This document shows, piece by piece, positions 3,001-58,563 of a stretch of DNA of 64,000 bases. The DNA lies in NCBI GenBank assembly GCA_965112735.1, contig OZ218955.1, positions 744,001 to 808,000 on the forward strand. Reading direction: 5' to 3'. The notes under the pieces are model-generated. The model saw only the letters and a program-made list of their open reading frames with translations. It did no database searches and was not told the DNA's origin. Origin of the DNA: Phaeosaccion multiseriatum (lineage: Eukaryota; Protista; Ochrophyta, other classes). The translations under genes were made by a program, and so were the position numbers. Within the stretch, counting starts at the first letter, position 1. The number at the start of each line of letters is the position of its first letter.

Positions 3001-3612
3001 AAGCGAATGAGGCATGTCGTATCGTAGCAAATATAATGTGTGAGTTAAATGCCAGTTGTTCATTCGCCCCTCCCTCCCTCCCTTTGTATCACCAATCCTC
3101 CCAGGACCAATGGTTAAAGGCCAACCCCTGTGCAGAAGAAGGCCCCGGAGTCCTCACCCTCGTTGGCTTTGGGGCCATTTCATCAAGTGTTGGTCAAGTC
3201 ACGGCCTACCCCTTACAGCTGGTGAGGACAAAGCTGCAGGCAGATACCGCTGTTCCGCGGCGCTATGAGGGCATGGTGGATTGCTTTCGACAAACAATCC
3301 AGACCGATGGTCTTCGCGGTCTGTATCGAGGCCTCGCGGTCAATTTCCTTAAAGCCTTGCCCGCCATTACTGGTAAGTTGATGTTTGTTCTGTATCACCA
3401 ACTACTGTGCTGTGCTGTCCCTTTTAGTTGTGTTTTGTCGCTATCTATTTTTATTATATTGCAACCATCTTCATCAAACTTGAACATAAAATCTTACGTA
3501 CCTTGCTTTTGATTTGTTGTTGCTTGTTGTCGCAGTTTCTTACGTCGTTTTTGAAAAGAGCAAGTTCCTGCTGACGCAGCGATTCGGCAAGCGCCAAGCC
3601 TCCGCCTGTTGA
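1..3612 (+). CDS. Ca2+-binding mitochondrial carrier (SCaMC/SLC25A23-25-like ATP-Mg/Pi carrier), 5' end outside window
   Basis: GT-AG exons 1-107, 404-584, 1115-1203, 1445-1592, 1963-2075, 2248-2367, 2564-2890, 3105-3372, 3536-3612 join into one reading. EF-hand loops DLNRDGVLSPAE and DSNNDGLVFVDD are followed by three carrier signatures PLDRLK, PLEIVKTR, PLQLVRTK with GLW/ALYRG/GLYRG. Ends ...RQASAC-TGA at 3612. Confidence 0.92.
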
Positions 3613-5329: not shown

Positions 5330-6529
5330 TCAGAAGAAGCCGCCTTCCCCATCGGTCTCTCCCGCGGCAAAGAAGTGCTGCTTCTTCTTTCTTCCCGGGC
5401 CTGCGAATCGCGGGGCGGGCGGACAGAGCATCTCCTCGTGATGATGTCCTTGTGCTTGTGCCTCTCTCTCCTTCATCACTCGTCGAATGTCTTGTACTTG
5501 CTCTGGCATGTGCTCCTCCTGCTGCGCCTCCTCCACCGGCTCTTGTTCCTCGTAGATGTGCCCCTCTTGTGACTGCTGCTGAGGCTCTCGCTGCTCCTCC
5601 CACCGGCCATCTTGAGGCAACGCTGATGATGATGGGTATCGAGGCTGGGGCCGGTGGTGGTGGTGGTGGTGGTGGTGGTGGTGGTTCTGAAACCGTAGCA
5701 GAGGAGGAGGGCTCGGAGACGCGCTTCTCGTACCATCGTCCGACTGGGCGGGAAAGAAGGACAACATGCCGCCGACCCCCAGTATGCCGGCGTCGCGGTC
5801 ATCTCGATTGTCGCTGTCACCATCACCACCATCTTTGTCGTCGTCCGTCGTGCTGTCCTCGTCCTCGCTGCTGCACTCACTGGTGCACGTGCCCGCAGAA
5901 TCCATCACGTCTTCCGCGGTTGTCTTATCCACGTCGTCGATGTCGATGCTCAGGATCCTCCTGCCAGTGGGCCGGCGGGGAGCCTGGGGGGGGGTGACTC
6001 TTGCGCATTGAACGCCAGGATGAGGGTGGTGGTGGTGGTGGTGGTGGTGGTGGTGGTGGGGGTGGGGGTGGTTGTGGTGCTGCTGCTGATGCTGATGCTG
6101 ATGCTGGTGGCTCATCTGGCTGCTGACATGAGGGACAGGGCTCCGCACAGCCTTGCCCCTTGAAGCTGCATACATCGCCTGGGCATGCGTGAGGGGACCG
6201 TTGGCCTGGAACCTTGCTCTCTTGAGCGGGCTTCCCCCACCCCGTGTCGCTTCCTGCTCCCTACATAGGCGCCTGCTCCTTGGTGGCGTGAAGGGAGAGC
6301 CACCATCACTTGTAGTATCATAGCTTGAGCAGCTCGTGGTGTCGCTTGTATCGTAGCCCATGCTCTTGAGTTCAGCACTACGCCACATTTCTCCTCCTTT
6401 AGACCGCCGATTGCAAGGCTCCTCTCCCTTGCTCGTCTCGTGGTGCGGTACGCGCTGTGGTTGTGGTAGGGTCAAGATGCATCCCTCGACCCCCACGACT
6501 GCAAAGCTCCCCCCCTGTCCTCCTGTCAT
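5330..6529 (-). CDS. Intronless disordered protein, CPPAPR/FF family copy A (SMR/SIAMESE-like motifs)
   Basis: 399-aa ATG-started ORF with poly-His and acidic tracts. Shares ordered motifs (DTSDTTSCSS, TPPR, KRAR, ILSIDI, LCPPAPR, FF) with the ORFs at 15909-16469 and 17920-18654. Confidence 0.65.
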   Translation of the reverse strand: MTGGQGGSFAVVGVEGCILTLPQPQRVPHHETSKGEEPCNRRSKGGEMWRSAELKSMGYDTSDTTSCSSYDTTSDGGSPFTPPRSRRLCREQEATRGGGSPLKRARFQANGPLTHAQAMYAASRGKAVRSPVPHVSSQMSHQHQHQHQQQHHNHPHPHHHHHHHHHHHPHPGVQCARVTPPQAPRRPTGRRILSIDIDDVDKTTAEDVMDSAGTCTSECSSEDEDSTTDDDKDGGDGDSDNRDDRDAGILGVGGMLSFFPAQSDDGTRSASPSPPPLLRFQNHHHHHHHHHHRPQPRYPSSSALPQDGRWEEQREPQQQSQEGHIYEEQEPVEEAQQEEHMPEQVQDIRRVMKEREAQAQGHHHEEMLCPPAPRFAGPGRKKKQHFFAAGETDGEGGFF

Positions 6530-7734
6530 GGCCTCTCTGACCCCCCTGTGTTCCTACTCTCTGACCCTAGTTCGGCCGCTTTCTGTGCTCTAGGTTGCTG
6601 CCCCTGTCGGGGTGCCTCCTCAGTATCCTTCCCTCCGTCTCCTACAGACGAACGCACCTAACAATTGTGTGCTGATACTAAGCGATGTACTGGAAAGGAC
6701 GTCTGCCAAAACTGGGAAGGTAGTGCTGAGCCACCTTAGAAGGCGTTGTCAAGATGCTCTAGTGGTGGCTCTAGCACGTGGGGCAGGTGGCCTGGCAAAC
6801 GTTCTGAGAATGCCTGACCGTTTTTTTTGTAACCGTCGAGTTCTCCCAAAGAGCAACCAGCAAAAACCCCATAAACAGCAGCTCACAGTTTTTTTGTTTT
6901 TTATGTGCTTGGGCAGGGGATGGGCAGTACGATGTATAAGCTAATCACAAACGGACCGTACGGACCGAAAAGCAACTTGCTTCTCTGCCACCGACCGCCC
7001 TTGGTAGGGCCAACCTTGTGTCGCCACACACCCCGTACGCCTACCCAGTGCTTCTTGAAGCTTCGGACATTGCCCTACAGCCCTACAGCTCGGCGACGTT
7101 GCGTGCGGTCCTCCCATTTCGTGGCCTACAACTGTATTCAGCCGTCGTGGAGCATATACAAGCTTTGGGAGTGCATGCAAGTGGTCGAATATTGTGACAA
7201 AAGAACAGGTACTGTCACTTCTCTAGCGTACAGGTCCAATCTGTGCCCACTTTGCACACTTCCCATCGAGCGAAACACAGAATCGAGAAGTGGTGTTCGC
7301 AAGCCAAACTGGAATTTTTCGTGTCTCGCATTGGCAGAAAAGGGCGAGGAAGGGGGGAGGTAGACAGCTCCTTCTCTGCGAGTGATGGCCTGTTCCTTCT
7401 CTTCCATCTGTGTCACTCCCTGCGAAGTGTTCGGGCCTGTCTCTCCCTCGCTTCGCAGATTTTGCATATCCAGCGGCGGGACCTAGGTTCTAGGTACACG
7501 GTGTCGCAGCTGCCGCAAATCAGGGCCTTCCCGTCGTGCTTCAGCTGACAGTGAGGCTGTGTCACCACCGCGAGCATGCAGACACGGTAGGCTGACCGCA
7601 GTCGACGACCAACTGAGCGGCCAAGTACTTTCCATACGTCTCCTCGTCCATCGCCACCCCTACCCTCCTGCATCCTCTACACTCTGCCTCTACCTCTCCC
7701 TCTCTCTGCCCCCCCCTCCCTCCCTCTCCCTCCC

Positions 7735-10700
7735 TCACGAGAAGGTAAAAGGCACCGTAATCACCGTGTCCTCCCCATTCGCGCTGACTGGGTACTCCGC
7801 AGCCCTCAACTCCTCGTCGAGCACCTCAAGGGCTTGCTCCTTACGGTCCAGAGGGAAGTTTCCTTCGTCCTTTTGGTCGGGGTCGTTGGGGCAATCCACC
7901 ATGGTGTTGCTTTGGGCACGCACGTCCGTCACGCTGCCATCTGACCCAGAGATCTGCAGAGGGATGAGGAGGGGGTCAGGGGCGAAGAGGAGGAGGAGGA
8001 GCAGCAGCAGGAGGAGGAGGAGGAGGAGGACCAAGTAACGAACTCCTCAATCTATGGTGTACCATCTATTATCTAGATAAAGACCATAAACGCCTTTTCT
8101 CATCTTTACGATAGCAGGCCCAGTCACCCAACCCCCACCTCCAAACTCAAACTTACATAGACCTTGACGGTGAGAACCCCCATGACTCGTGGCAGGGACT
8201 GGAGGCCCAGCACGGCCCTTCCCATGGACTCATTGAGAGGCGTCAGGGCCTCGTCTGCCGTCAGCCCGCCTGTGAAGTAAGGCTCCGGCTCGGTGAACCA
8301 CCTGGGGCAGTCACAGATGGCACCACGTGGCACCGACAGGGTGGGACGGGGGGGTGGTGGGGAGGGTTTGATTGAGACTCATTATATTCGCAAACGATTC
8401 ACTTCCCCTTGTCTTCCCTGCGCCGCCGCTCTGACACCCCCTCGCGGACACGCACTTGGGACTAACCCCTCCCCTCCCTCCCTTGGGACTAAGTCCACCC
8501 CCCCTCCCCCCCTGGGACACTTGTACGCACCCGTGCAGAACAAGGCGCCCCTTCCGCGGATCCTTGGTGCCCTGTGTGTGTGTGTGTGTGTGTGCATATG
8601 TGTGTTTGTGTGTGCATGTGTGTGTGTGTGCATGTGTGTGTGTGTGTGTGCATGTGTGTGTTTGTGTGTGCATGTGTGTGTGTATGTGTATGTGTGTGTA
8701 TGTGTATGTGTGTGTGTGTATGTGTATGTGTGTGTGTGTGTGTGTGTGCGTGTGTGTGTGTTTGTGTGTGGATGTGTGTGTGTGCGTGTGTGTGTGTTTG
8801 TGTGTGTTTGTGTGTGCATGTGTGTGTGTGTGTTTGTGTGTGTGTGCATGTGTGTGTGTGTGTTTGTGTGTGCATGTGTGTGTGTGTGTGTATGTGCGGG
8901 CTGAGAAGATGCGCCAAAACACACAACGGTACGCTGATACAGCCTCTCACAACCCCTCTCTTGCCTTGCCCCCCCCCCCCTGACCCATTCACTGACTTAA
9001 CGACTCATTCACTGACTTATGCCCTCCCATTACCTACCTCGACTTTCTCGACGTAATGAGGGATTCGCGGATCGAAGAGCGTTAGGCGGTTGAAGTGAGG
9101 CTCAATCTGAGGCAGACAAGTGGGTTAGGGCGGGGGATAGAAGGAGATGAGGGGAGATGAGGGGAGGAGAGAGGAGGAGGGGAAGAGAGGAGAGGAGGGG
9201 GAGGGGAGTGGAGGAGAAAAGATAAGAGGGGAGGAAGGAGAGGAGAGGAGTCCCTCTTGTGTCACACCATGCCATGTCTCAAAAAGACAAGCTCATATGC
9301 GCACGAAACTGTCTGTGGTCCCCAACGCCTCTACACTTAACACCCCACCAGACCCACCCCACCACCCCATCACCCGTCAACCTTCCCCCCTTCCCCCCCC
9401 CTTCCCCGTTCCCCTCTCCCTTCCCCTCCTCCTCCCCCTTTCCTACTTTCTAACCCTACCCAGATACCCACCCACCCATCCAGCCGTGGTCTACCCCACA
9501 CCCCATCACAATCCCTCAACCCACCCACCCACCCACCCACCCCACCCACCCAATCACACACCCACTCACCCACCCACCCCACCCACCCAATCACACACCC
9601 ACCCACCCACCCACCCACCCCACCTAACCACCCACCCACTCACCCACCCACCCACTCACTCACCCACTCACCCACCCACCCACACGCATACACACCCACA
9701 CACCCACCCAATCACCCGCCCCCCCCCACACACACACCCAGCCACCCCTGTCCGGCAATCGTACCTTATCGATCAAGTGCCTCTCCTCCAGGCCGAGGCC
9801 GTGCTGAAAGGACTGCCAGTAGGACGTGGTGTGAGGCTTGTATACGCAGGTTTGTCCTCCCGTGAAGCCGCGGCCGTCCCAGTCAGTGAGCGATAGCACA
9901 AAGGCCCAAGGCCCTGTGTGGGATGGGATGGGATCGGATCGGATTAGGTGATCAATGATATGTGGGTGGGATCGATTCACAGGCAGTGGGTGATGGCAGT
10001 ACATGGGTGAGTGGGTGAACATGACGCTGAAAAGAGAAGAGACACAGACAGAGAGAGGTACGGAAAAGGCACGCGTGACGATGGAGAAATCGGCAGTAGC
10101 TACTGCAGCCCAAAGAGGAGACAGGAGAGGAGCACTCCAGTGTATCACCCACTGCAGTATCACCAACTGCTGCTGCTGCTGCTGCTGCTGCTGCCGCTGC
10201 CGCAGCTGCCTCTGCTGCTGCTTCTTGACGACGACCACGACTACCCTCCCTGCTCTGCTCTACCGTCTGCCACTCCCCTTGATGCCCTTACCATGCCAAG
10301 AGTCCGTGTGCACTCTCTGCTCGCACCCGTCGGTGTAGCACGATAGCCACGGAGGACTGATGCTGCGGCAGCCCAGAGAGGCTTGGCCGAAGTCGCACAG
10401 GGCGTCCACTAGGGTCTGAGGGGAGGAGAGAGACACAGAGAGAGAGAGAGAGGTAGGGGAGGGAGAAGTGGTCGTGTGTGCGTGTGTGTGCGTGTGTGTG
10501 CGTGGTCGTGTGTGTGTGCCTGTGTGCTTGGCCTGTGCTTGTGGGCGCGTGTGTGCGAGCCCCTCCCCATCCTCTGCCATCCCTTCCTCTCCCTCCCTCA
10601 CCTTGAAGTCCTCGGGTCCGAAGTACTGCTCTGCCGGGGTGCGCAACAGCGTGTACTGGTCGGGTACGTGCCAATGGTCCCACACGAACCTTACCAAACC

Positions 10701-12713
10701 AATACAGGAGGGGGGGGGCGAGTGGGATAGAGGGGGTTAGAGTGAGGTAACGCAAGGGAGGCACAGGCGCACTGTTGGGCATGGAGTTGTCGGCTTCTTT
10801 ACTTCGAAGCATATGGTAGTCGCTGCAGAAGGTCACGCCTCCTTCTTGTTCTCCCCTCCTCCTCCTCCTCCTCCTCCTCCTCCTCCCTTGTTATTCTTTT
10901 CCATACATCGTCCTTCTTTCTTCCCTCCCTCCATCCGTTCGTTCTTCTCTCCCTCTGCCCTTCCACGTTCAGAGGCAGATGGCAGGGGCTTCTCACCTTT
11001 CGCTGTGTCCCTCGCGGGGATCGCGAAACTTGTCCATGAAAGTGCCTCGAAGGGCACTGAAGAGTGGCGTTTCAAGCGTTTCAACCGTTTCAAGGGGAAC
11101 AAGAGAGATTGTGTTCAAAGGAAGGGGGTGAAGGGAGCATACAGAGCGTGTTTAGGCTGGTCCACTTATTTACTCACTCACTCACCCACTCACTGACTCC
11201 CTCCCCCCCTCCCTGACTCACTCTGCGAAGTCCGGCTGCAGGAAGTTGTCAAGCACGTGTATGTGGTCGGGTTGGCTCTCCAGGATCGCCGCACCTGTGA
11301 TAAGCTCGTCCGTTGAGCCGTCTTTGGCCAGCATATCGGTGGGACTAGGAGGGAGGGAGTGTGCGTGGGTCCGTGTGTGTGCATGTGAAGGGAGTTGGAA
11401 CGATTCGGGGTGGTGGGGGGGGGGTTGAGGTCATCGAATGGGACAAGGGATAAGGGGCTTCCCAATGGAATCCCTCCCGCCACCTCAGGCTCTTGCTCTT
11501 CGTGAGCAGCATGCGTAAGTGTACACGTCAGTACACGTAAGGCCCACATCAGCATACACGTGACGATGGCACGGACCTGTAGTTGGGCTCTGCAAAGTAC
11601 TTGGCGATTTCCTCTTGGCTGAAGTCCTCTCCGCCGTCACCACCCTCGCTGGCGTCAGCCCCCCCTTCCGCTTCGTCGGGATCTACTGCGCGGGGTGAAG
11701 TAGTCACGGAGAAGGAAGCAAGGATTTGAGTTTGCGCACACACACATACACACACGCGCGCGCGCCTTTGAGCCGGTTTTCGCCTTCGCTTCTCTCTTTC
11801 TCACACAAGCGCGAGCAACTGAAAGGCAGACAGCACGTGCACTTGAACAGAAAGACAGCGGCGGGCGGCACACACACACACACACACACCCCGCCTTCCT
11901 CCCGGTACTAATATGAACATTATGCACTCCACACACTCACTCACGCCCTCATGCATTCGCGCACGCACCTCCATCGACGACGTTGTCATCCGGCTCAAAC
12001 TCATCGAGGTCATCGAGCCCCTCGAGCTCTGCTTGCACGTCCTCGAGGCCGAGGGACGCCAAGTCCTCCTCGTTCACCTCGATCACCTCAACGCCAGCAC
12101 CACCTTCAACACCGGCGAAGCTGTCTTCCTCCTCCTCTTCCTCTTCCTCCTCGTTCTCGCCCTCCTTGTCCTCCTCCTCCTGCTCCTCCCTCTTCCCCTC
12201 GTGGCCCTCCTCTAGCATATCCACTGCATGTACAGCATAGTTCGAGGGTGGGAGGGAGGGAAGGATCATGAGCACAGCGACACTATTGTAGGCGCAGAGT
12301 CGGGGGGGGAGGGGGAGAGGGAAATTGGTCCTCACGCACTCACCTTCAACCTCCTCCTTGTCTTCGCTCCCCTCCTGCCCGGCCTTTGACAAGTGCAGAG
12401 ATGGGGACTTTCCTTGGTCACTCCTATACCACCCGCTACCACCAACGCCGCCGTTCCGGCTTCTAACTCTCTTGCTCGGCGGTGGTCCGCCGCTCCCTGT
12501 AGGATTATGTAAGGCGAAAGGGCCCCTCTTCACCTCCGCCCATCTTCTCATCCGTTGCCCTCGCTGATTTCGCGGAGGGTTACTGTGCGCACGGCCATCA
12601 TAGCGAGGAAGTCGTAGAGAAGAAGAGGCCGCAGGTTGCGGCACGAAAGCCTCTATTTGGGGTAATACGACGAGCAGGCCCACCAGCGTGCTGGTTGTTG
12701 CGGTTGGTCTCAT
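7735..12713 (-). CDS. Plastid-targeted 2OG-Fe(II) oxygenase-like conserved algal protein with acidic N-terminal region
   Basis: About 12 exons. N-terminus MRPTATTSTLVGLLVVLPQIEA-FVP (signal + ASAFAP-like), then a D/E-rich tract, then HIHVLDNFL, FRDPREGHSER-FVWDHWHVPDQYTLLRTPA, PPWLSCYTDGCEQRVHTDSWHG-PWAFVLSLT, FTGGQT, FNRLTLFDPRIPHYV, GRLVLHG-WF. HxD...H triad plus a downstream R fits the 2OG-Fe(II) fold. Ends VPFTFS-TGA. Confidence 0.8.
8573..8895. repeat. Interrupted (GT)n microsatellite in intron
   Basis: About 320 bp of GT with GCAT/GTAT/GTTT interruptions. Confidence 0.95.
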
Positions 12714-13025
12714 GATACGTGCAGCCCCGGCCAACCCTTCTCGGCGTGAAGGGAGGGAAGGAGGTTAAGAATAAGAAGGATATTCACCTGAGTGGCCAGG
12801 TAAATGCTGTGTAATAAACAAAAAACAAAGGTTTTAAATGAGCTCGGGCGGACACACTGAAGCACCAACTGCTCCATCTGTTGTCCCTTCCACACAATCT
12901 TGATCCAATCGGCTCTTTCGGCTCCTTCCTCCCCCCTCTTTCAATCTCCCGCCTTCTATTTTCTCCCTTCTCGTCGTCAATCCTCAGTAGAAGGCTTGTC
13001 GAGCCCAGCTCAAAACTCAGCAGCA
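12714..13025. promoter_or_regulatory. Putative bidirectional promoter region
   Basis: About 310 bp between the divergent ATGs of two plastid-targeted genes, with an A/T-rich core near 12770-12840. Inferred from geometry only. Confidence 0.5.
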
Positions 13026-15021
13026 ATGTCGGCGGTATCGCTGACATGCTCTAGCCTATTGATGCTCACCTCTGTTGCCACCGCTTGGGTAGTCAGTCCA
13101 TGTGCACTTTCTCGGCCCTTCGCACCACCACCTCCTCCACCACCAGCAGCAGCAGCAGCGACAGCAGCAGCAGGAGGAGGAGGTGCACGGTGTAAGATGG
13201 GCTGGACGAGGGCGCACGTTCGTCGGCGCGCAACGGAAGGGCGAGGAGAAGGCGAGGAGATGGGGGACGAGCTCCCTCAACGGGAGGAGCGACCCAAGAA
13301 GGGCAAAGAGGTTCACCGAGATGCGAGTGGAATACCTGTTGAGCCAGTCTACGCTCCTCGTATCAGCGCCTATAAGGCTCCGAACAGCAAGGCGACGAAG
13401 AGGATCCGCGCACAAGGGCAGAACAGACTGGAAGGCATTTCCAATCCCGCCAAGCTCAAAGTGGGTCGTGTGTGTGTGTGGGGGGGGGGGGGGGGGGGGG
13501 GTGGTGTGGGGGGGGGGGGTGGGTGGGTGGGTGGGGGAAAAGGGGGGAGGTACATGTGTTGCACTTGGGGAGGGGAGGAGAGGAGACAAGAGACACTACA
13601 CTACGAAGTGGGCCCAGGTTGTGGATGTCGTAATGCATTCACGACGGGCTTAGTGTATTCACAAGTGGCCACTGTGATCCATCTGCCATCAGCTTTCGAG
13701 GAGGGAAGGGGCGGGGCGGAGGGAACAGGGGTATCCTATGTATTGGCCCGCTTACATCAATCGTCGATGCTCCCCCCTCCCCCTCTCTCTCTGTCCCTCT
13801 CTCCCCTCCCCACCCTCCTTCCCCTCTGTTTCTCTCTCTCTCCTCTCTCTCTGTCTCTCTCTGTTGTGTGTGTGTGTTCTGTCTGTCTCTGTCTCTCTCG
13901 TCCCTCTCTCTCTCTCTCCCTCTCCCTCCCTCCCTCTCCCCCCACGACCGCCGCAGGTGATGGGGGGTTCCGTGAAAGGAAGGAGACTTGAGTCTCCTGA
14001 CGTGTACCTTCGCCCCATGATGGGCCGTGTGAAGGAAGCACTCTTCTCGACCCTCACAACCTTTGAGGTGTTTCGTCCCGGCCGCTCTCCTCGCTTTCTG
14101 GACCTGTTTGCAGGCTCCGGAGGTGTGGGTATTGAGGCGCTCTCCCGGGGGGCGGACCACGCCACCTTTGTGGACTTTGCTCAGGACTGTTGTGATACGG
14201 CGGAGAGGAACGTTGCCATTTGCGGTTTCGCGCCGGAGCAGGGGAGGTCTGTGTGTGCAGATGTGCTTGAGGTGATGCGGTGAGTAACTGCGGTGGGTAA
14301 GGTGAGATAGTGTAGGCAGTCAGTCAGTCAATCAGTCATTCAGTCAGTCAGTCAGTCAGTCGGTCATTGAGTGTCAGTCAGTCACTCAGTCACTCAGTCA
14401 ATCAGTCAGTTCAAAGCACACCACACAGATTTTTGCTCGTTCGTTCGTTGGTTCAGTATCGAGGGAAACAACCACCAGGTCGGGTGAATTGGGTGTGCCC
14501 CCAAGACAGGTCTGGAGGGAAGAGAAGAGCCTTGCTTCTTTCTCTTGCGCAACCCCTTTGCTGCCATGCCATACCCACCGATTGATTGCCTTACTCACTG
14601 CCTCCCTCACCCCTCTTCTTTCCACCCTCTCTCCTTCCTCACTCCCCTCCCTCCCTCCCTCCCTCACAGGAACCCCTCTCGCTTCCAGCTGGACACGGGA
14701 GTGCCTTTCGACGTCGTAACCGCCACCCCTCCTTACCAAGAGATTGTGTACAGCGAGCTCATCGACGCCATAATGCACAGCCCCTTGGTGGGCGAGGACA
14801 CCATAGTGGTGATTGAGTACCCGGTCGAGCTGGGCTGTCTCCCTCATCTGCTCGGGGAGGGTAGGATGGTGGGTCTCCGGAACCGCAAGTACGGGCGGAC
14901 GGTGGTGGCGGTGTATATCGTGCGGCCGTCAGGGAGTATCGATCTCGCTGACTCACGCCCGGAGGAGTTCATATCCCTCAAGAAGGTTAAGGGCGGACGG
15001 CCTGCGCAAAAGGGCTACTGA
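13026..15021 (+). CDS. rsmD: RsmD-like 16S rRNA m2G966 methyltransferase, probably plastid-targeted
   Basis: Exons about 13026-13460, 13958-14279, 14670-15021. Motifs GGSVKGRRL, LRPMMGRVKEALFS, SAM-binding LDLFAGSGGVGIEALSRGA, TPPY (DPPY-like), RKYGRT. N-terminus MSAVSLTCSSLLMLTSVATA-WVV is signal + ASAFAP-like. Confidence 0.9.
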
Positions 15022-15908
15022 ATTAATTTATCGCTATACTGAATTGCTTGAGCCATCTCAATGTCCATGGCCACCAACTATTGACAAAATAGAATAACTT
15101 TGATGACCTGGGTCTGTTGTACAATGTATTGTCTTCTTACCTCATAAGGTGTTCAATTCTAAAAATGCTCTTCGGGTCCAGTGGATGTGCTCCATCCTTC
15201 CTCCCTGCCTCCGACACACTTAAAATAAAGATTCAAACTGTGTATGCTGCGTACATCGTCAGAGCTATGCCTGAGCCTCCACCCACACCGCCCCCATACA
15301 AGAAACCGATTCTTACAGGGGAGGCGCGCGGACATGTACAACGCATGTGCCCGGAAAGCTGAGCTCCTACTCCTAAGATCCTCCTACGATGGCGAGGGTT
15401 CTTGACCAGACGGAGTCTCCTAGTGACCGGCCTTCGAGTGTCATCCATGGGGCACGGCCGTGAGAGGAGCATGCCTTCCTTCTCGTTCGTTGGGTTGCTG
15501 CTCGCCCGCCCGCCTGGTAAGGCCTTTCATCGCCCAGCAATGTAGGCGGCGTGTAGGTGCGTGGGTGCTGGTCAGCAGCAGTCAGGCCAGGCCAGGGCAT
15601 ACGGGTTACCCTGTGTGTGTGCGTGTGTGCAGGAAGTTTGTCGCCTGCCGCATTCCGCCGTGACAGCCCACTGGCAATAACGCTTCCACGCGCCGCCAGC
15701 TCCACGCTGATGGGGCTTCTCTTGTTGTGCCCTGCGTCAGTCGAAGCCTCGCAGCAGGTGTGTGTGGTCGGACGAATCGATCGGTCTCTCGGTCGCCGCG
15801 CACAAGGGCAGTCAAGGAGGGTATGCCAGGCAGGTGGCCTCTCCGCCGCCATCGGAAGTGGTGTCCTCCCGCCTCAAGGCCAGCTTTCCGTCCCGAAGCA
15901 CATCACCT

Positions 15909-16469
15909 TCATCCGTCTTCGTCGTCCTCCATCTCGTCCGTGTCCCAGCCCTCTCCCTCGCCACTTGTGCTCTCGCCGAAGAAGCTCATACGGTTGAAGG
16001 AGGAGCGGGGCGGGGCTGGGCACACCATGCCACACTCTCCTGCGGGGCACTCTGGTGGCACGGGTGGGCTGGGCGTCGCAGATCGATCATCAGCAAGCCG
16101 AGCGTCGCCCTCTACCAACGCGCTTCTGGTACTGTTGGCGGCTGAGATGTTGAGAGACAGAGCCCGGTACACGAGCCTCTGTCCCCCTCTCGTTCCTTCT
16201 CCTCCACGGTCGGTAGCCTCAGGTACAGCAGCAGGAGTAGGTGGCGGAGTGACCAATGCTGTGGCCCTTGTTGGTGTCGGTAGGCATGCTCCATCCTGAC
16301 ATGGCAGCTCTGTTGGGAGGTACTCCTGGATCCTCGCTCGCTTTGTCTGGCGCTGCTTGCATGCGTTGGCGCTGTCATCCACCTCTGGAGTCAGAACGAA
16401 GCGAGGAGGAGTGTGCAAGTATACAGCTCTGGGGGTCTCTGCTCTTTTCATCGACATGCTGATGGCCAT
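15909..16469 (-). CDS. Intronless disordered protein, CPPAPR/FF family copy B
   Basis: 186-aa ORF, clear paralog of 17920-18654 (KRARIQEY, QDGA, LSL.I, EGD.RLADDRS.TP, ECG.VCPAPPR, M.FFGES.SGE..GW, TDEME). Confidence 0.65.
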   Translation of the reverse strand: MAISMSMKRAETPRAVYLHTPPRFVLTPEVDDSANACKQRQTKRARIQEYLPTELPCQDGACLPTPTRATALVTPPPTPAAVPEATDRGGEGTRGGQRLVYRALSLNISAANSTRSALVEGDARLADDRSATPSPPVPPECPAGECGMVCPAPPRSSFNRMSFFGESTSGEGEGWDTDEMEDDEDG

Positions 16470-16845
16470 GATCCAACAAGCAGTCCTTGTAGCTCATGTG
16501 GATTGGGTGGCCTCTTTTCTTTTGGAGGGTGTGATATCCGTCGGCCTGCATCTGGTGAATGCTCCGTTGCAAAGCTAAAGAGTCGGCAGAGATTGCTACG
16601 CAGCTATAGAGGCGGTGGATCATATGTTCGTGCGTATTGGCCGGTCTTTTACGCGAGCCGTCGGGTGCAACGAATAAAACGTTTCAGAAATTGCACCACC
16701 CAGCAGGAAGGATTCTCCGATCCGTTTCCTTCGGGGCCTTTTTTTTTTTAATTGTGCGCACGCGCGGTGGAACGTGGCACGTTCTTGCGGGGCCTTCATT
16801 TGAGGGTGTAGGTAGCAGATGATGCGTGGGCTGGAGGGAGTGCAC

Positions 16846-17022
16846 GAGTGAGTGAGTGAGTGAGTGAGTGAGTGAGTGAGTGAGTGAGTGTGTGAATGTG
16901 TGAGAGTGCGGATGAGTGGGTGAGTGGGTGAGTGAGTGGGTGAATGCGTGAATGGGTGCGTGCGTGAGTGCGTGTGCGCGTGCGTGGGTGCATGAATGAG
17001 TGAGTGAGGGAGTGAGTGAGTG
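16846..17022. repeat. (GAGT)n/(GCGT)n microsatellite
   Basis: Direct reading. Confidence 0.9.
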
Positions 17023-17919
17023 GGGAGAGGAGGAAGAGCATCATCACGCCCTGTGCTGGACTGTGCCTCTCACACTCTGTGTCAAGAAGCCGCCCTGCCC
17101 TCTTTGTGTTTTGTGGTCCGAGCGTTACTGGCGTGAAGAAGTAAGGAAGGGGAGGAAAAAATATCGCTCCAAGTAGCTGGGCTGATTGAAGTGTTTGCGT
17201 CCCAAACTGTACATATTGTCCTTTTATTTGTCCTCTTCATCGCCTTTCCTATTCACTGTACTACCTACGCGCTTGCTCTGCGCGAAACTCTTCACATGTG
17301 TGTGTGTGTGTGTGTGTGCGTGAGTGCCATTCTGACCGCCTTCTCTGCCTACTTTTTACGTACACACTGACGCATGCGTGGAGTAATGGAGTCTTGTAAT
17401 GGAGTCTCCCCCATACAAGACGCAAAGTTCTCTCCGTACCCGGGGCCGAGCGGAGGAGTGAAGCTAAACTAAAGCTAAACACTCCGCTGGCTTGCTTGCC
17501 CTGCCTCCGAGTGATCAACCTCCAAGGCTGTCACCGGGGCCGAGCGCGGGGGGCAGCCCCCCCTTTTCGCCGCTCATCGTGTAGCGATGTGTGTGGGCGC
17601 GGGGGTGCGTGGGTGCGGGTCAGCAGCAGCATCCAGTCTAGCCCGGCGAGTGGTTCGAGGTGCAGTGCTGAAGTGTCCGCCCCTTGCACAAGAAGCAGGG
17701 GAGTACGCGTGCCGTGGTGGGGCCGTCGACAGGCTACTCCTGCTGCTCCTGCTGCTGCTGCTGCTACTGCTGCCGCCGTGTTGAAGCTTCTCTTGCGGCT
17801 CATCACGGGTGTCGGTTGGTCGGGCCACGCCCACTCCACTGCCATCGGCACGGCACGGTCCGGCGTCGTCTCCTGCTGCACCACCAGCAGGGTCATCTCC
17901 TTGCGCACCAGCACCAACC

Positions 17920-18654
17920 TCAAGGCCTGCTCTCCGTCCAGGTGAGGTCGCGGTCCTCCCCGCCCTCCATCTCATCCGTCCTGATGGCCCAGCCCCCTTC
18001 CTCGCCACTGGCGCTCTCGCCGAAGAACGTCATGCCTTGGCTGGAGGAGCAGCGGGGCGGGGCAGGGCACAACACGCTGCCACACTCCACCATCGGGGCG
18101 GAATTCCTTCTCCTCCCATGGGCCGGGAGTGTGGAGTGTTTCCCCTGGTACTGCTCTCCTCCCACTTGGCCGAAGGGGGGGCATGCTGGTGGCGTAGTAG
18201 ATCGATCATCAGCAAGCCGACCATCCCCTTCGGCCAAGGCGGTCGTCCCTGTGTTGTTGGCACTGAAGATATCCAGGGACAGCGACCGGTGCAAACGCCT
18301 TCTCCGTCCACAACTCGCGGTCCCTCCCTCACCGCCAGTGGCATCAGCAGGCACGGCCGCAGGAGGAAGAGGAGGACTGACCGTCGCCCTTGTTGCCCAG
18401 GCTCCGTCCTGTGGCTGCACTGATGGGAAGTCAATGTCGTATTCTTGGATCCTTGCTCTCTTGGACCGCGGCGGCGCACAATCACTTTGAGGTGGGAGGC
18501 GGCCGTGGCCGTTGCCATTGCAGTAGTAGGGGAGTGTGTCGCAGGTACTGCCACTGCTTGTGCAGCTACCTGTGTCACTATCGTGCCCTGACTCCTGCAA
18601 CACCTTTCTACAGAGGCTCATCTGTTTGGGCCAGCGTTGCCTCATCAGATTCAT
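17920..18654 (-). CDS. Intronless disordered protein, CPPAPR/FF family copy C
   Basis: First ATG at 18654 (MNLMRQ...). Paralog of copy B at protein and nucleotide level (GATCGATCATCAGCAAGCCGA shared) and shares HDSDTGSCTSS with copy A. Confidence 0.65.
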   Translation of the reverse strand: MNLMRQRWPKQMSLCRKVLQESGHDSDTGSCTSSGSTCDTLPYYCNGNGHGRLPPQSDCAPPRSKRARIQEYDIDFPSVQPQDGAWATRATVSPPLPPAAVPADATGGEGGTASCGRRRRLHRSLSLDIFSANNTGTTALAEGDGRLADDRSTTPPACPPFGQVGGEQYQGKHSTLPAHGRRRNSAPMVECGSVLCPAPPRCSSSQGMTFFGESASGEEGGWAIRTDEMEGGEDRDLTWTESRP

Positions 18655-18967
18655 TTGGCCTCGCTCGCGGGCCTTTTTTGGGGCTGGCTTCTTTCCACTC
18701 GTGCAGAGCACAGAGCAGGAGGAGAAGAAGAAAAAGCAACCACCCCCCCTCTTGCTGTATAGGTGCAACTGCTCAAAGGAAGTAGTAAAAGGAGCTGGCT
18801 TTTCTCGTGTTGGAGTTGCTGTGAATTCATTCGCACAACCTTGTCAGCAGGGCACAAGATCCCTCTGGCGGCAATTTGCCTCGTGACGAGGTGAGAAAAC
18901 GGCAAAACCGTTTTCCGAAAACGGCCAAAAATCGTCCTCCCTTTTTTCGCGACCCTGCTTCCTGCTT

Positions 18968-19530
18968 CTGGCCGGCTGGCGATCACTCACTCACTCACTC
19001 ACTCCCTCACTTCCTCACTCCCTCCCTCACTCACTCACTCACTCACTCACTCCCTCACTCCCTCACTCACTCACTCACTCCCTCACTCACTCACTCACTC
19101 TCACACCCTTTTCCCCATCGTCCACATTCTCGATAGCGCGCTATCGGGCCCCGGCGATAGCGGATAGCGTGCCGGCTGGCGGATAGCACGCCCCAACAAC
19201 CCCCCCCCCCCCCCAACAGCCGGCTGGCGCCGGCGATAGCGGATAGCGCGATAGCGGATAGCGTGCCAGCTGGCGCCGGCGATAGCGGATAGCGCGCCGG
19301 CTGGCGCCGGCGATAGCGGATAGCGCGCCGGCTGGCGCCGGCGATAGCGGATAGCGGATAGTGTATCAGGGGTCGATCACTCACTCACTCACTCACTCAC
19401 TCACTCACTCACTCACTCACTCACTCACTCACTCCCTCACTCCCTCACTCACTCACTCACTCACTCACTCACTCACTCACGCACCCACGCACTCACTCCC
19501 TCACTCACTCTCTCACTCACTCACTCCCTC
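18968..19530. repeat. GC-rich 31-bp GATAGC repeat array embedded between two (TCAC)n tracts
   Basis: Unit GCCGGCTGGCGCCGGCGATAGCGGATAGCGC repeated at about 19150-19360; perfect palindrome CGATAGCGCGCTATCG at 19131-19146; CGATCAC-(TCAC)n flanks at about 18980 and 19374. Confidence 0.9.
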
Positions 19531-19830: not shown

Positions 19831-22708
<2,878 letters not shown>

Positions 22709-23605: not shown

Positions 23606-24408
23606 GCATCGCCCAAAAGTATGTCAGTGCACGCAGCTAGGTAACAAAGGCAACCACAGCATTAAACTGAAACTGAAACTATCCTATCCCCCGGGGCCTA
23701 CCTTGTCCCAGCATGGCGAGCACGTCCCCGGCGGAGTTGGCCACATTCTCCACAAGGACCTGCACACACAGCACACACACGCACACGTACACACACACAC
23801 AGCAGGGAGATATAAGCTGCAGTCAAAGGGGGAAAGCAGTAGGAGAGTAGAGGGAGGAGGAGGAGGAGGACCTCCAGGTACATGACAGTTACACCTCAGT
23901 TACGTAACGGTACGTACCATGACCTTGTCCTCCATGATGGTCTGCATGGCCTGCCTCTCATTGGCGAGGTCTTCGCAGCGCCGCCGCATCTCCTCTTCTT
24001 GTCCTCCACCTCCACTGCTGCCCAGATGGCTGCTGCTGCTGCCATCTGTAACTCTGCTACCACCACCACTCCCCCCACCACTGCTCCTGGCCATGTCGCC
24101 ACCGAACCTGTCATCGACGCCGTCACTGCCCTTCTTCTCCTCCTCCTCCACCTCCTCCTCCTCTCTCCTTCGAAGCTCGCCCCTCAGACGGTCGTTTTCT
24201 TCCTGCAACTGTTGCACCAGAGACGACAGCAAGGCGCTCCCCTCCCCGCCCCCCTCTTGCTGCTGTATCACCAACTGCTGCACTGCCGCCGCCTCCGGGT
24301 CTGTTGTTTGACTGTGTGCATCGAGAGCATTCACCAAATGTCCGCTCTCCCTGTGTGTGTCCAAGCGATACGGGCAAGCAAGCAAGCCACAAGAGAACAC
24401 AAACACAT

Positions 24409-33912: not shown

Positions 33913-35348
33913 ATGGAGGAAGGAAGCCCCCAGCTTGGAACCTGGAACTATCTCGACGGGCGATGGGTGAACAACACTCGCCGGAGGAGCGGAGCTGGCT
34001 CTCCCCCCCCCCCTCTTGAGCGCGGGGATGCGGCCTCCATCATCGCCAGTGATCTCGTCCAAGCGGGAGAAGAGGAGATGGCGAGCAGGTTGTCGATTTC
34101 GAGCATTGCCAGTGGTAGTAGTACTTGCAGTACGGAGCGGGAGGAGCTGCACAAACGGAAGCGGAGTCTGCACAACTCATCTCAGGAGGAAGGAGTCGAG
34201 GCTGAAAGCGATGGGGAGGAGGGATCGCCACCAGCGTCAGGACGGGACGAATTGTTGGGGGAGAGCACGCGTGGCAGGGGAGTACGAAGAGGGAGACAAT
34301 GGCAGTCAAAGGCAGCTTTAGCAGCCGCGGCAGCAGCTGCAGGAGCAGCAAGAGGAGGAGGAGGAGGAGGAGGAGGAGGAGGAGGAGGAGGAGGAGGAGG
34401 AGGAGGAGGAGGTGGAGGAGGAGGAGGAGGAGGAGGAGGAGGAGGAGGAGGAGGAGCAGCAGCCGGAGGGGGGGGGGGAGGAGGAGCAGCAGCAGGAGCT
34501 GAAATGCGGGACGTGGGTGTTACAGGCGGTGCAGCAGCAGCATTAGAAGCAGTAACAGGAGGAGGAGGAGAAGGGGGTGGTGGTGGTGGAGGAGAGGGGG
34601 GGGGGAGAGGAAGAGGAAGAGGAGAAGGAGGAGGGGAGGGAGGCGAAGAGATGCGCAGCAAATCTCGGCGCAGCACCAAGGGGGGTAGTAGCCCCAGTCG
34701 AGCCGCAGTACAGTCTCGTATTGAGGAGCAGATGCGAGCGGCGCGGCTGCTGCTGGACGAGGACGATGAGGACGACGAAGAGGAGGAAGAAGAGGGCGAG
34801 GGCCTCGGGGGGGGGCAAGGAAGAGGAGGAGGAGGAGGAGGAGGAGGAGGAGGAGGGGGAGGGGGAGGTGGCGGTGGTGGTGGTGGTGGAGGAGACACGA
34901 TGGACACGAGTGTCGGAGGGGAAGGACCGTCGGTCGGGGCGGGCGGCGCTGGTACATACGGTGGAAATAGTACGAGTACAGGTGCCGCTGTGCCTCCGCT
35001 CGGAAACCTGTCTTCTTCTTTCTCAACACGCGCCCCCACCATGGCAGTGGCCCCTCCCCATCAGCAGGGCCAGGATAAGTACAGTAAGGCAACGGAGGTC
35101 CTCCAAGGAGCGGATTTTGTCTCGCTGTATCGGGTAGAAAGGCAGCTAGGGGTGGGGGCCAGCAGCGTCGTCTATCTGGTGAAGGAACTGTCTACGGGAC
35201 AAGACTTCGCGGCCAAGGTCATTGACTTACGGGCGTTCAAGGTGAGTAGTTGGGGTGGTGTTGGTGCTGGTGTTGGTGTTGGTGATACAGCAGGAGGAGG
35301 AACGTATGGCGCTGTGCAAGCAACACTTGAAAACTAATTCGTCATGTT

Positions 35349-56903: not shown

Positions 56904-58563
56904 TTACGAGGCCTCCACCTCCACCTCTGCCCTCTTCTTGTCTTTTCCCTTCCACGTCCACATGCCTCTGCTCTCCTCCCACGACGGAGTGGTGCCGTCT
57001 GCTGCCGTCGCTGCGGCCGCCCCCGCGGGGCCTCCCCCGGTGGGTAGGGGCTGTGTGAGAGCAAGTACGTCCATCATGTCTCCGACATATGCCAAGGCAC
57101 GCCGCTTCTCCTCGAAGGTCACGGCGGGGGCGCGATAGGCCAACGAGTAGTCGCCGTAGACGCCTGAGGGAGTTGGTGATACAGAGGAAGGGGAGGGGGG
57201 GGGAGGGAAGGAGGGGGGAGGGGGTGGTGGGCCGCAAAGTCAAGAGAGCGCTCCAATAATTAAGACAAGCAAGTGACGTCTCTACGTGCCTACAAACTCC
57301 TACGTACCCTCTGTGCCGTTCGCTCCCCCGTGGTAGGCAGGCTCTCCCCCTCCTCCCCCTCCTCCTCCTCCTCCTCCTCCTCCTCCTCCTCCTCCTCCTC
57401 GCCCCTTGTTCCTATTGCGGGCTCCATCCCCTCTCCAAAAGGTGGAGCCTACGATATGTCCCCCGTCCTTGTGGAAGTCAGGAGAGTACTCCACGTGATG
57501 GTAGAGCTTGTCCCCCGGGGTGGCCACGGGGATGTTGTTGCGCTTTAAGCGGTTGGTTTGCACCTGACCGTGTGTGAGTGTGTGAGTGTGTATGTGTGTG
57601 TGTATGTATGTGTGTGTGTTTCATGCGTGTTTCAACTTGTGTGAGTAGAGAACGGAGGACCGGCACCACCCCGAGTCGGAGGCAAGGCACAGAACCATTC
57701 GATATCGATCTTATGGTCCTCGAAACAGGAGAAACAAGAACAACTGGAACTGGAACTGAACCTGCCCCTTCCCCCTTGTGTGAGCAGGTAGGTACTCACT
57801 CACCTTCTTCTTCTGCCCAAAGGCCTGTTCCAGTGTGGCCTCCGGCGACTGATTGTAGCGCACGAGCTCCCCTGACTTCGGGTTGACAGGGTTGAACTTG
57901 CGGTCAATCTGGTGGATAGAGGCGGTGGGCGAGGGTGCAGGGGGGGTAAGGTAGTCAGTCCACATAGTCCACATAGTCCACACAATCCACACTGTCCGCA
58001 GCCTTCCTCTCCCGTCCACTGCCATCTGCCCCCGGCCCACTCACACACAGGCCCTTCTCTGGGATATCGTATCCACTCCTGTTGCTGAACTCCGGCACCG
58101 GTCGGAGCCCCTCCGGTCTATCCTTCGGGACGGGCTTGGCCCCTACCCGCCGAAGGCCCTGTACACGCGGGTAGGCATCTCCCTTCGTGTGGGGACCAAG
58201 GATGCGCCGGCAGGGGCGGAACTGCCATTCATCGGAAGGCTGCTGCTGTGGGTATTTCAAGCGGCCTTTATCACCGGGTGCGAGGAAGGGTTCCCGTTCC
58301 CTGGTGATGCCACCAGCAGTGAGTGAGTGGGTGGATGGAGTGGAGTGGAGTGAGTTGAGGGAGGGAGTGAGGGAGTGCTTGAGCTGAATGAAGGAGAGAG
58401 GGAGTGAGGGAATGAGTGAGTGCGGTAGTGAGTGAGTTTCCTTAGAGTTGAGGGAACTAGTGGGCGAGCGGGAAGGCGCAAGTCGGGATGGAGAGGAGAA
58501 ATACCACAGGGAGAGGAGGGGCAAAGGGCCAAGGGGCTTTCGATTCCAGAGATTCGATTGCAT
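56904..58563 (-). CDS. SPATS1/SASRP1-like (cilia/centrosome-associated) protein
   Basis: Five exons starting MQSNLWNRKPLGPLPLLSLW-EREPFL. RNNIPVATPGDKLYHHVEYSPDFHKDG resembles the conserved RNGIP..PGD..Y..PE.S..FHK block of SPATS1 (recalled, not searched), followed by TFEEKRR. Confidence 0.65.

Follow-up and report, generated by a model that had tools for sequence, protein, structure and literature searches.

Three uninterrupted reading frames with collinear short motifs in the alga Phaeosaccion multiseriatum: a candidate family of disordered docking proteins and its limited likeness to plant SIAMESE inhibitors

The stretch of DNA analysed here, a segment of 64,000 nucleotides from the alga Phaeosaccion multiseriatum (contig OZ218955.1, positions 744,001 to 808,000; hereafter the window), carries three open reading frames (ORFs) on its minus strand, here called A, B and C. 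A first-pass annotation, made from the sequence alone, had described them as intronless paralogs with motifs resembling those of the plant SIAMESE/SMR (SIM/SMR) inhibitors of cyclin-dependent kinases (CDKs). An ORF check of the window bore out all three frames at the coordinates given below, in which C sits 1.45 kb upstream of B on the minus strand.

5330-6529, minus strand: ORF A, 399 residues, 44.5 kDa, isoelectric point (pI) 6.2; the divergent, expanded member.
15909-16469, minus strand: ORF B, 186 residues, 19.9 kDa, pI 4.75; the most compact member.
17920-18654, minus strand: ORF C, 244 residues counted from the ATG, 26.1 kDa; the tandem paralog of B.

Codon usage, scored with small margins and from a small training set, was best in the proposed frame among the six in each of the three ORFs, and in-frame stops precede the respective ATGs by 8, 8 and 63 codons. 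The open frame of C extends as far as a TTG at 18768, and the stretch between this TTG and the ATG scores as non-coding. Judged from these features, A, B and C are probably real protein-coding genes, and probably single-exon ones. That they are instead exons, or wrongly delimited parts, of larger spliced genes would be in keeping with three features: introns do occur in neighbouring gene(s) of this genome, a GT comes only a few bases after the stop in both B and C, and the first 47 residues of A match nothing in the other two proteins (the conserved part of A begins near Met48). We nevertheless regard this as quite unlikely, given the upstream stops and the non-coding score ahead of the C start codon, and given that B and C cease to be conserved at the stop, that all of the common motifs lie inside the ORFs, and that the intron-associated 12-mer GTTGGTGATACA, abundant in the window, does not occur once within A, B or C. 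The earlier description of the surroundings as intron-rich holds for the neighbouring RsmD-like gene, the one gene covered by this check, in which two ORFs share the Pfam match between them.

By sequence comparison, B and C are clearly true tandem paralogs, with 45% identity and a BLASTP E-value of 4e-23. Over an alignment of 169 codons, synonymous divergence (dS) is 0.99 and nonsynonymous divergence (dN) 0.33, with 44, 48 and 78 differences at the first, second and third codon positions; the resulting dN/dS of 0.33 (bootstrap 0.21-0.51) indicates purifying selection on both genes, rather than the ratio near 1 that the first-pass annotation had named as fatal to its proposal. Identity between the two clusters in short motif blocks with indels between them, and DNA similarity spans the ORF plus about 40 bp past the B stop, the flanks being unaligned except for microsatellites. 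An apparent similarity upstream of the two genes was rejected as homology, consisting only of a (GAGT)n/(TCAC)n microsatellite. Beyond the stop of B, positions 15872-15911 align to the last codons of C at 17918-17960 (..GGACGGA[A/G]AGC.GGCCTTGAGG), and because this post-stop DNA matches coding sequence in C, B appears to have lost its last ~10 codons through an earlier stop or a frameshift; TDEME..ED is the last protein block kept in both. About 300 nt downstream of the two stops there is also a 34-nt block, 88% identical between 15548-15581 and 17596-17629, which may be a shared element of the 3' untranslated region or just CA/C-rich low-complexity sequence.

The codons lost by B, the low-complexity content of A and the lack of homologs elsewhere would all fit a set of unexpressed or decaying, functionless duplicates. 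Such an origin is very unlikely, however, for genes whose frames have stayed intact over a dS of about 1 with a dN/dS of 0.33 and whose identical residues gather in separate motif blocks.

The motifs quoted in the first-pass annotation are all present in A, B and C and stand in the order that it stated, as established with a motif table and regular expressions. Their positions, together with those of the other motifs discussed below, are the following.

6323-6358, minus strand: A, acidic Ser/Thr patch GYDTSDTTSCSS.
6278-6289, minus strand: A, TPPR, a full S/T-P-x-K/R consensus beside KRARFQ.
6221-6232, minus strand: A, SPLK, also a full S/T-P-x-K/R consensus beside KRARFQ.
6206-6223, minus strand: A, KRARFQ, a basic, nuclear-import-like motif.
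5987-5998, minus strand: A, VTPP, just upstream of RILSIDI.
5939-5959, minus strand: A, RILSIDI in the context GRRILSIDIDD, an R-x-L-S-hydrophobic-D/N motif.
5795-5824, minus strand: A, acidic block DGDSDNRDDR, of a type common to A, B and C.
From 5714, minus strand: A, S/T-P site RSASPSPP, of a type common to A, B and C.
5333-5428, minus strand: A, C-terminal module LCPPAPR - RKKK - FF - x10 - GFF-stop.
16401-16412, minus strand: B, TPPR.
16326-16343, minus strand: B, KRARIQ, part of KRARIQEY, which is identical in B and C.
16242-16253, minus strand: B, VTPP.
16146-16166, minus strand: B, RALSLNI, which fits the RxL cyclin-docking expression.
16071-16112, minus strand: B, EGDARLADDRSATP, an acidic block running into a T-P site.
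15945-16025, minus strand: B, C-terminal module VCPAPPR - x7 - FF - x9 - GW, then the acidic tail TDEMEDDED.
18556-18588, minus strand: C, acidic Ser/Thr patch GHDSDTGSCTS, the counterpart of GYDTSDTTSCSS in A.
18445-18462, minus strand: C, KRARIQ (KRARIQEY).
18370-18381, minus strand: C, VSPP.
18268-18288, minus strand: C, RSLSLDI, preceded by RRRRLH; fits the RxL cyclin-docking expression.
18190-18231, minus strand: C, EGDGRLADDRSTTP, the counterpart of the acidic block and T-P site of B.
17989-18072, minus strand: C, C-terminal module LCPAPPR - x8 - FF - x9 - GW, then the acidic tail TDEMEGGED.

Three motifs, KRAR[FI]Q, V[TS]PP and R.LS[IL][DN]I, occur in all three proteins; TPPR is found in A and B, with APPR in C, and at each C terminus [LV]CP[PA][AP]PR is followed by FF and then by G[WF]. 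ORF A ends in CPPAPRFAGPGRKKKQHFFAAGETDGEGGFF and a stop. Two further common motifs, [ED]GD..DDR and RS[AT][ST]P, extend the original list, and the acidic Ser/Thr patch of A and C has no counterpart in B. Full S/T-P-x-K/R sites are represented by TPPR and SPLK in A and by TPPR and TPTR in B, and the RxL cyclin-docking regular expression is matched by B and C. In a six-frame translation of the 64-kb window (128 k residues), CP[PA][AP]PR and CP..PR.{3,15}FF are confined to A, B and C, and KR.R[FILV]Q occurs once more beyond them. A tblastn search of the window found no fourth copy; an RSLSLDI at 20757 was rejected as one, sitting as it does in a low-complexity repeat of the (TCAC)n type. In a comparison by eye, none of the APC/C D-box, PIP box, PP1 RVxF, B56 LxxIxE or Atg8-interacting motifs fits. 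The R-x-L-S-hydrophobic-D/N motif, which has basic residues ahead of it, could equally be read as a basophilic-kinase site or as a SUMO-interaction-like strand.

The relationship of A to the other two is far less direct. BLASTP of A against B and C returned short collinear segments only (E 0.004-0.16), HMMER with B and C scored A under its own shuffles, and hhalign recovered one segment (P 0.044). Because none of these methods aligned A, we devised a custom chain test: ungapped segments are matched between A and a profile built from the columns common to B and C, and the collinear chain with the highest score is taken. The chain score of A was 166 at a threshold of 16 and 128 at a threshold of 20, against 89-95 and 38-47, respectively, for shuffles (z 4.2-4.8); at both thresholds, and with both whole-sequence and 25-residue-window shuffling, 0 of 500 shuffles scored as high. 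When stop-free stretches of the window served as natural controls, none of the 32 reached A at threshold 20, and 4 of the 32 did so, after scaling for length, at threshold 16. Pairwise chain tests of A gave z values of 1.4-3.2. The blocks forming the chain (KRARFQ, VTPPQAP, RILSIDI..., DGDSDNRDDR, PSPPP, CPPAPR and F..GE..GEGG) are those that B and C conserve.

These results lend statistical support, on the basis of a custom statistic, to A being a distant paralog of B and C that was enlarged by insertions rich in His, in acidic residues and in Q/E; two runs of its sequence are His-rich, one S/T/D stretch is acidic and one helix is rich in Q/E. The first-pass view of three paralogs is accordingly secure for B and C and, for A, depends on the chain test. 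It may be instead that A is unrelated, its motif order having arisen by chance or convergence in Pro-, Ser- and Arg-rich sequence, and that the family consists of B and C only. The single short BLASTP segments, the sub-noise HMMER score, the hhalign P-value, the low pairwise z values and the four controls equal to A at the looser threshold all speak for that possibility, which we nonetheless consider fairly unlikely. Apart from the profile chain result and the controls at threshold 20, seven to nine motifs stand in the same order in A, exactly at positions conserved by B and C; the rest of the window is essentially devoid of CP..PR.{3,15}FF and KRAR[FI]Q; and A lies less than 10 kb from B on the same strand.

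Searches for relatives outside the window were uniformly negative. A Pfam scan of A, B and C to E 10 and a PDB sequence search gave no match, and a word search of 5.8 billion proteins, run with B plus C and with A, returned no relatives. Exhaustive HMMER searching of 1.84 billion representatives with the B/C profile yielded nothing at E <=0.001 except one bacterial repeat protein (E 4e-4, seven matched stretches), which was rejected as spurious. On metagenome contigs, the patterns KRARIQEY and M[TS]FFGE produced 137 pattern matches, 0 of them confirmed, and an ESM Atlas feature search, with a top score of 0.82 to unnamed fungal clusters, was uninformative. The conserved homologs whose absence the first-pass annotation had held against its own proposal were thus not found; this is weak evidence, because the databases contain no close relative of this alga and the proteins are disordered and fast-evolving.

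In agreement with the earlier description of disordered sequence, A, B and C are predicted to be intrinsically disordered. An AlphaFold2 model of B, with C as the alignment, had a mean predicted local distance difference test score (pLDDT) of 50.8 and no secondary structure, and one of A alone had a pLDDT of 45 with helices only at residues 115-123 and 343-360, values to be read in the light of inputs of one or two sequences, for which low confidence is expected regardless. Disorder-promoting residues make up 66% of the composition.

To place the shared motifs against those of the SIM/SMR inhibitors, we compared them with published motif descriptions and with SMR sequences. SIM/SMR proteins are 8-19 kDa in size and known from land plants only, being absent in Chlamydomonas and Ostreococcus; their motif A is required for CDKA;1 binding, mutation of motifs B and C matters little, and motif C, placed near the C terminus, reads EIERFF (PMC10904545). 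The SMR core consists of C.TP....[KR]IP, 2-8 residues, CPPAPRKP (or CPPPPRK, CPAPPRKR), a basic cluster and one or two aromatic pairs, and both CPPAPR and CPAPPR are seen in real SMRs such as GmSMR8/9 (PMC7389639, supplement 7). Against these sequences, the sketch of SMR motifs on which the first-pass annotation relied was broadly right. SMR genes were fetched from metagenome contigs with a back-translated CPPAPRKPR pattern, which located plant SMRs on 15 loci, and seven distinct sequences out of these formed the SMR alignment. One dicot SMR is present on loci L002, L058, L076, L086, L097, L115 and L117; further SMR loci are L059/L075/L084, L001, L046, L088, L072 and L118, with L072 encoding a non-seed-plant type SMR of 158 residues and L118 a moss-type fragment ended by the contig edge.

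The algal proteins resemble SMRs in several respects. The proteins on either side are disordered and made up of short motifs, and their genes probably have no introns; the uninterrupted ORFs, upstream in-frame stops and pLDDT of 45-51 agree with the single-exon, disordered character of SIM/SMR proteins. In both, a hydrophobic residue (L or V in A, B and C, as in many SMRs) precedes the CPxxPR core, an acidic stretch and a T-P site stand before it, and an aromatic FF follows, with a basic cluster between core and FF in A; indeed A repeats the SMR layout of CPPAPR, basic cluster, FF, ~10 residues and a second aromatic pair. A motif of R-x-L type and a basic one of nuclear-import type are also common to the two.

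The differences are more numerous. The SMR motif A expression TP.{3,8}[KR][IVL]P and the motif C expression [DE][ILVM][DE]x[FL]F each had 0 matches in A, B and C. Instead of motif A (C.TP....[KR]IP), which the algal proteins lack, there are only bare T-P/S-P sites (TPSPPVPPE in B); the K/R-P that follows CPxxPR in SMRs is missing, with F, S and C there instead; and FF comes 7-11 residues past CPxxPR with acidic residues after it, in place of the acidic E-x-E that precedes it in SMRs. The R-x-L and import motifs lie N-terminal of the core in the algal proteins and C-terminal of it in SMRs, although moss SMRs do have an N-terminal RRRLSLD. At 20-44 kDa the algal proteins are large, A (44.5 kDa) and C (26.1 kDa) falling outside the SMR range and B (19.9 kDa) being borderline, and their host is a stramenopile, outside the land plants to which known SMRs are restricted.

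No similarity emerged at the profile level either. Aligned by hhalign to the seven SMRs, the C-terminal halves of the algal proteins matched over 10 columns around CPxxPR only (probability 5.9%, P 0.0064), and when the algal profile was chain-tested with the seven one by one, no result was significant (z 0-2.5). BLASTP of the A tail against the moss SMR fragment recovered CPPAPR (6/6) and no more, and BLASTP of B against the L072 SMR gave E 1.4. An expression for the core syntax, derived from SMRs (acidic - TP - 8-20 residues - CPxxP[RKS] - 3-40 residues - aromatic pair), was matched in the window by B alone, in 10 of the 15 SMR loci and in 3 of 85 chance CPPAPRKPR loci; the distance from T-P/S-P to CPxxPR, SMR-like in B, is ~40 residues in C and ~95 in A. 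With a CP..PR background of ~1.6e-5 per residue and a conditional chance of 3.5% for the remaining syntax, ~2 chance matches are expected per proteome, so the match in B is a lead rather than evidence of kinship. In a comparison that covered three 10-residue motifs of moss SMRs, GRRILSIDID of A scored 29 against the moss N-terminal GRRRLSLDSW, a score that 0 of 2000 shuffles reached, the pairing having been chosen after the fact and left uncorrected. The N-terminal GRRRLSLDSW and SL[ST]LD[VLM]S of PpSMR1-10, which lie outside the usual SMR motif descriptions, resemble the algal R.LS[IL][DN]I (5939-5968, 18262-18294).

A, B and C might accordingly be read as stramenopile SIAMESE/SMR CDK inhibitors, through either ancient homology or convergence, which would dock on a cyclin via R-x-L-S-L-D, engage cyclin-CDK via the acidic-TP...CPxxPR...FF core and block the kinase. 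Aside from the shared CPPAPR and CPAPPR cores, their acidic, T-P, basic and aromatic surroundings, the syntax match of B, the post hoc moss resemblance and the disordered, probably single-exon proteins, this reading benefits from a vacancy, in that homology has revealed no CDK inhibitor in diatoms (PMC2872877). It remains an unlikely one. The motif required for CDKA;1 binding, the E-x-E before FF and the K-P after CPPAPR are all missing, sizes and T-P spacing depart from those of SMRs except in B, the hhalign, chain and BLASTP comparisons are as weak as described, the exhaustive HMMER search brought up no SMR, chance alone would supply similar syntax matches, and E2F and MSA promoter elements are lacking upstream. 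Membership of the SIM/SMR family, as the first-pass annotation had proposed, is therefore not borne out: what is shared is the CPxxPR core and FF, and the resemblance is by itself too thin for the SIM/SMR label, leaving a CDK-inhibitor role as a lead.

The interpretation that we favour, and hold with roughly even confidence, is that A, B and C form a lineage-restricted ochrophyte family, or one evolving too fast to be recognised elsewhere, of nuclear, disordered, phosphorylation-controlled docking proteins, united not by a fold but by short linear motifs, about nine in number and collinear, with variable linkers between them. It builds on what was observed here: the paralogy, the purifying selection on B and C, the disorder predicted for the proteins, the occurrence of the motifs in one order and the lack of detectable relatives. 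A nuclear location, kinase docking and any link to the cell cycle are inferred. The proteins would be imported into the nucleus via the KRAR basic motif, the most likely import signal; the R-x-L motif would be recognised by a cyclin, or else by a basophilic kinase that phosphorylates its Ser; the S/T-P sites would be phosphorylated by a proline-directed kinase such as CDK, and among kinase partners a cyclin-CDK is the most plausible; and the module at the C terminus, CPxxPR-FF-G[WF], would hold a further partner.

Several observations weigh against this interpretation. To the alignment results for A, the reliance of its kinship on a custom statistic, the four controls at threshold 16 and the limits of the AlphaFold2 inputs must be added that A fails the RxL regular expression, that C has no full-consensus CDK site (S/T-P-x-K/R) and that neither E2F nor MSA promoter elements were found upstream of A, B and C. 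Moreover, short motifs of the RxL, S/T-P and K-R-x-R kinds turn up frequently in disordered sequence, and any function read from them is conjectural.

Such an architecture has precedents. The yeast proteins Sic1 and Far1 are fast-evolving and disordered, keep docking motifs, S/T-P clusters and import signals, and have relatives that become invisible beyond a narrow clade; the analogy is one of architecture only, and no sequence relation is claimed. Inhibitors of the ICK/KRP and Cip/Kip types are likewise small to medium, disordered, nuclear and equipped with an RxL-type cyclin-docking motif, but A, B and C lack their CDI domain (PF02234), as they lack any Pfam match to E 10 and any PDB match. 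Like orphan gene families, A, B and C have no homolog among billions of database proteins, have undergone local tandem duplication and contain low-complexity sequence. Unlike them, the B/C duplicates are old (dS ~1), constrained (dN/dS 0.33) and possess a defined motif grammar, features that point to an established function and away from an ORF recently born de novo. The family is new, in that no relatives were found; its kind, the orphan disordered short-motif family, is familiar.

CDK inhibitors have been identified by homology neither in diatoms (PMC2872877) nor in red algae (PMC11231608), an absence attributed to very fast evolution. A, B and C offer three candidates that can be tested at little cost and whose motif grammar is defined. 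Binding to cyclin-CDK would extend the motif logic of SIAMESE beyond land plants or reveal convergence on it, and if the SMR-like mode of action also held, the core grammar would be far older than land plants or would have been convergently reinvented in a secondary alga. Should they not bind cyclin-CDK, they would represent an old, constrained, lineage-restricted short-motif family, useful for annotation and otherwise ordinary.

Between A and B, on the opposite strand, lies a gene for an RsmD-type RNA methyltransferase (PF03602), which has at least one intron.

13738-15021, plus strand: RsmD-type RNA methyltransferase gene.
14317-14410: (CAGT)n microsatellite inside an intron of this gene.

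In a database search with its first ORF, the best matches of this gene were to Phaeothamnion (69%), Ectocarpus (73%, a partial match), Chrysophaeum, an ochromonad and Triparma, with identities to ochrophytes ranging over 52-73%. These matches place the host among the ochrophyte stramenopiles, in line with the non-plant alga assumed in the first-pass annotation.

Repeats are a further feature of the window. The 12-mer GTTGGTGATACA has 19 sites when one mismatch is allowed, compared with 0.17 expected from shuffles, examples being 3391-3402, 19852-19863, 20041-20052, 20964-20975, 24264-24275, 35278-35289 and 57172-57183. About 0.5 kb upstream of C, a 31-bp tandem repeat with the unit GCGATAGCGGATAGCGCGCCGGCTGGCGCCG occupies 19123-19356 in 3.5 copies of 97% identity, with degenerate copies ahead of it, and is flanked by two (TCAC)n microsatellites.

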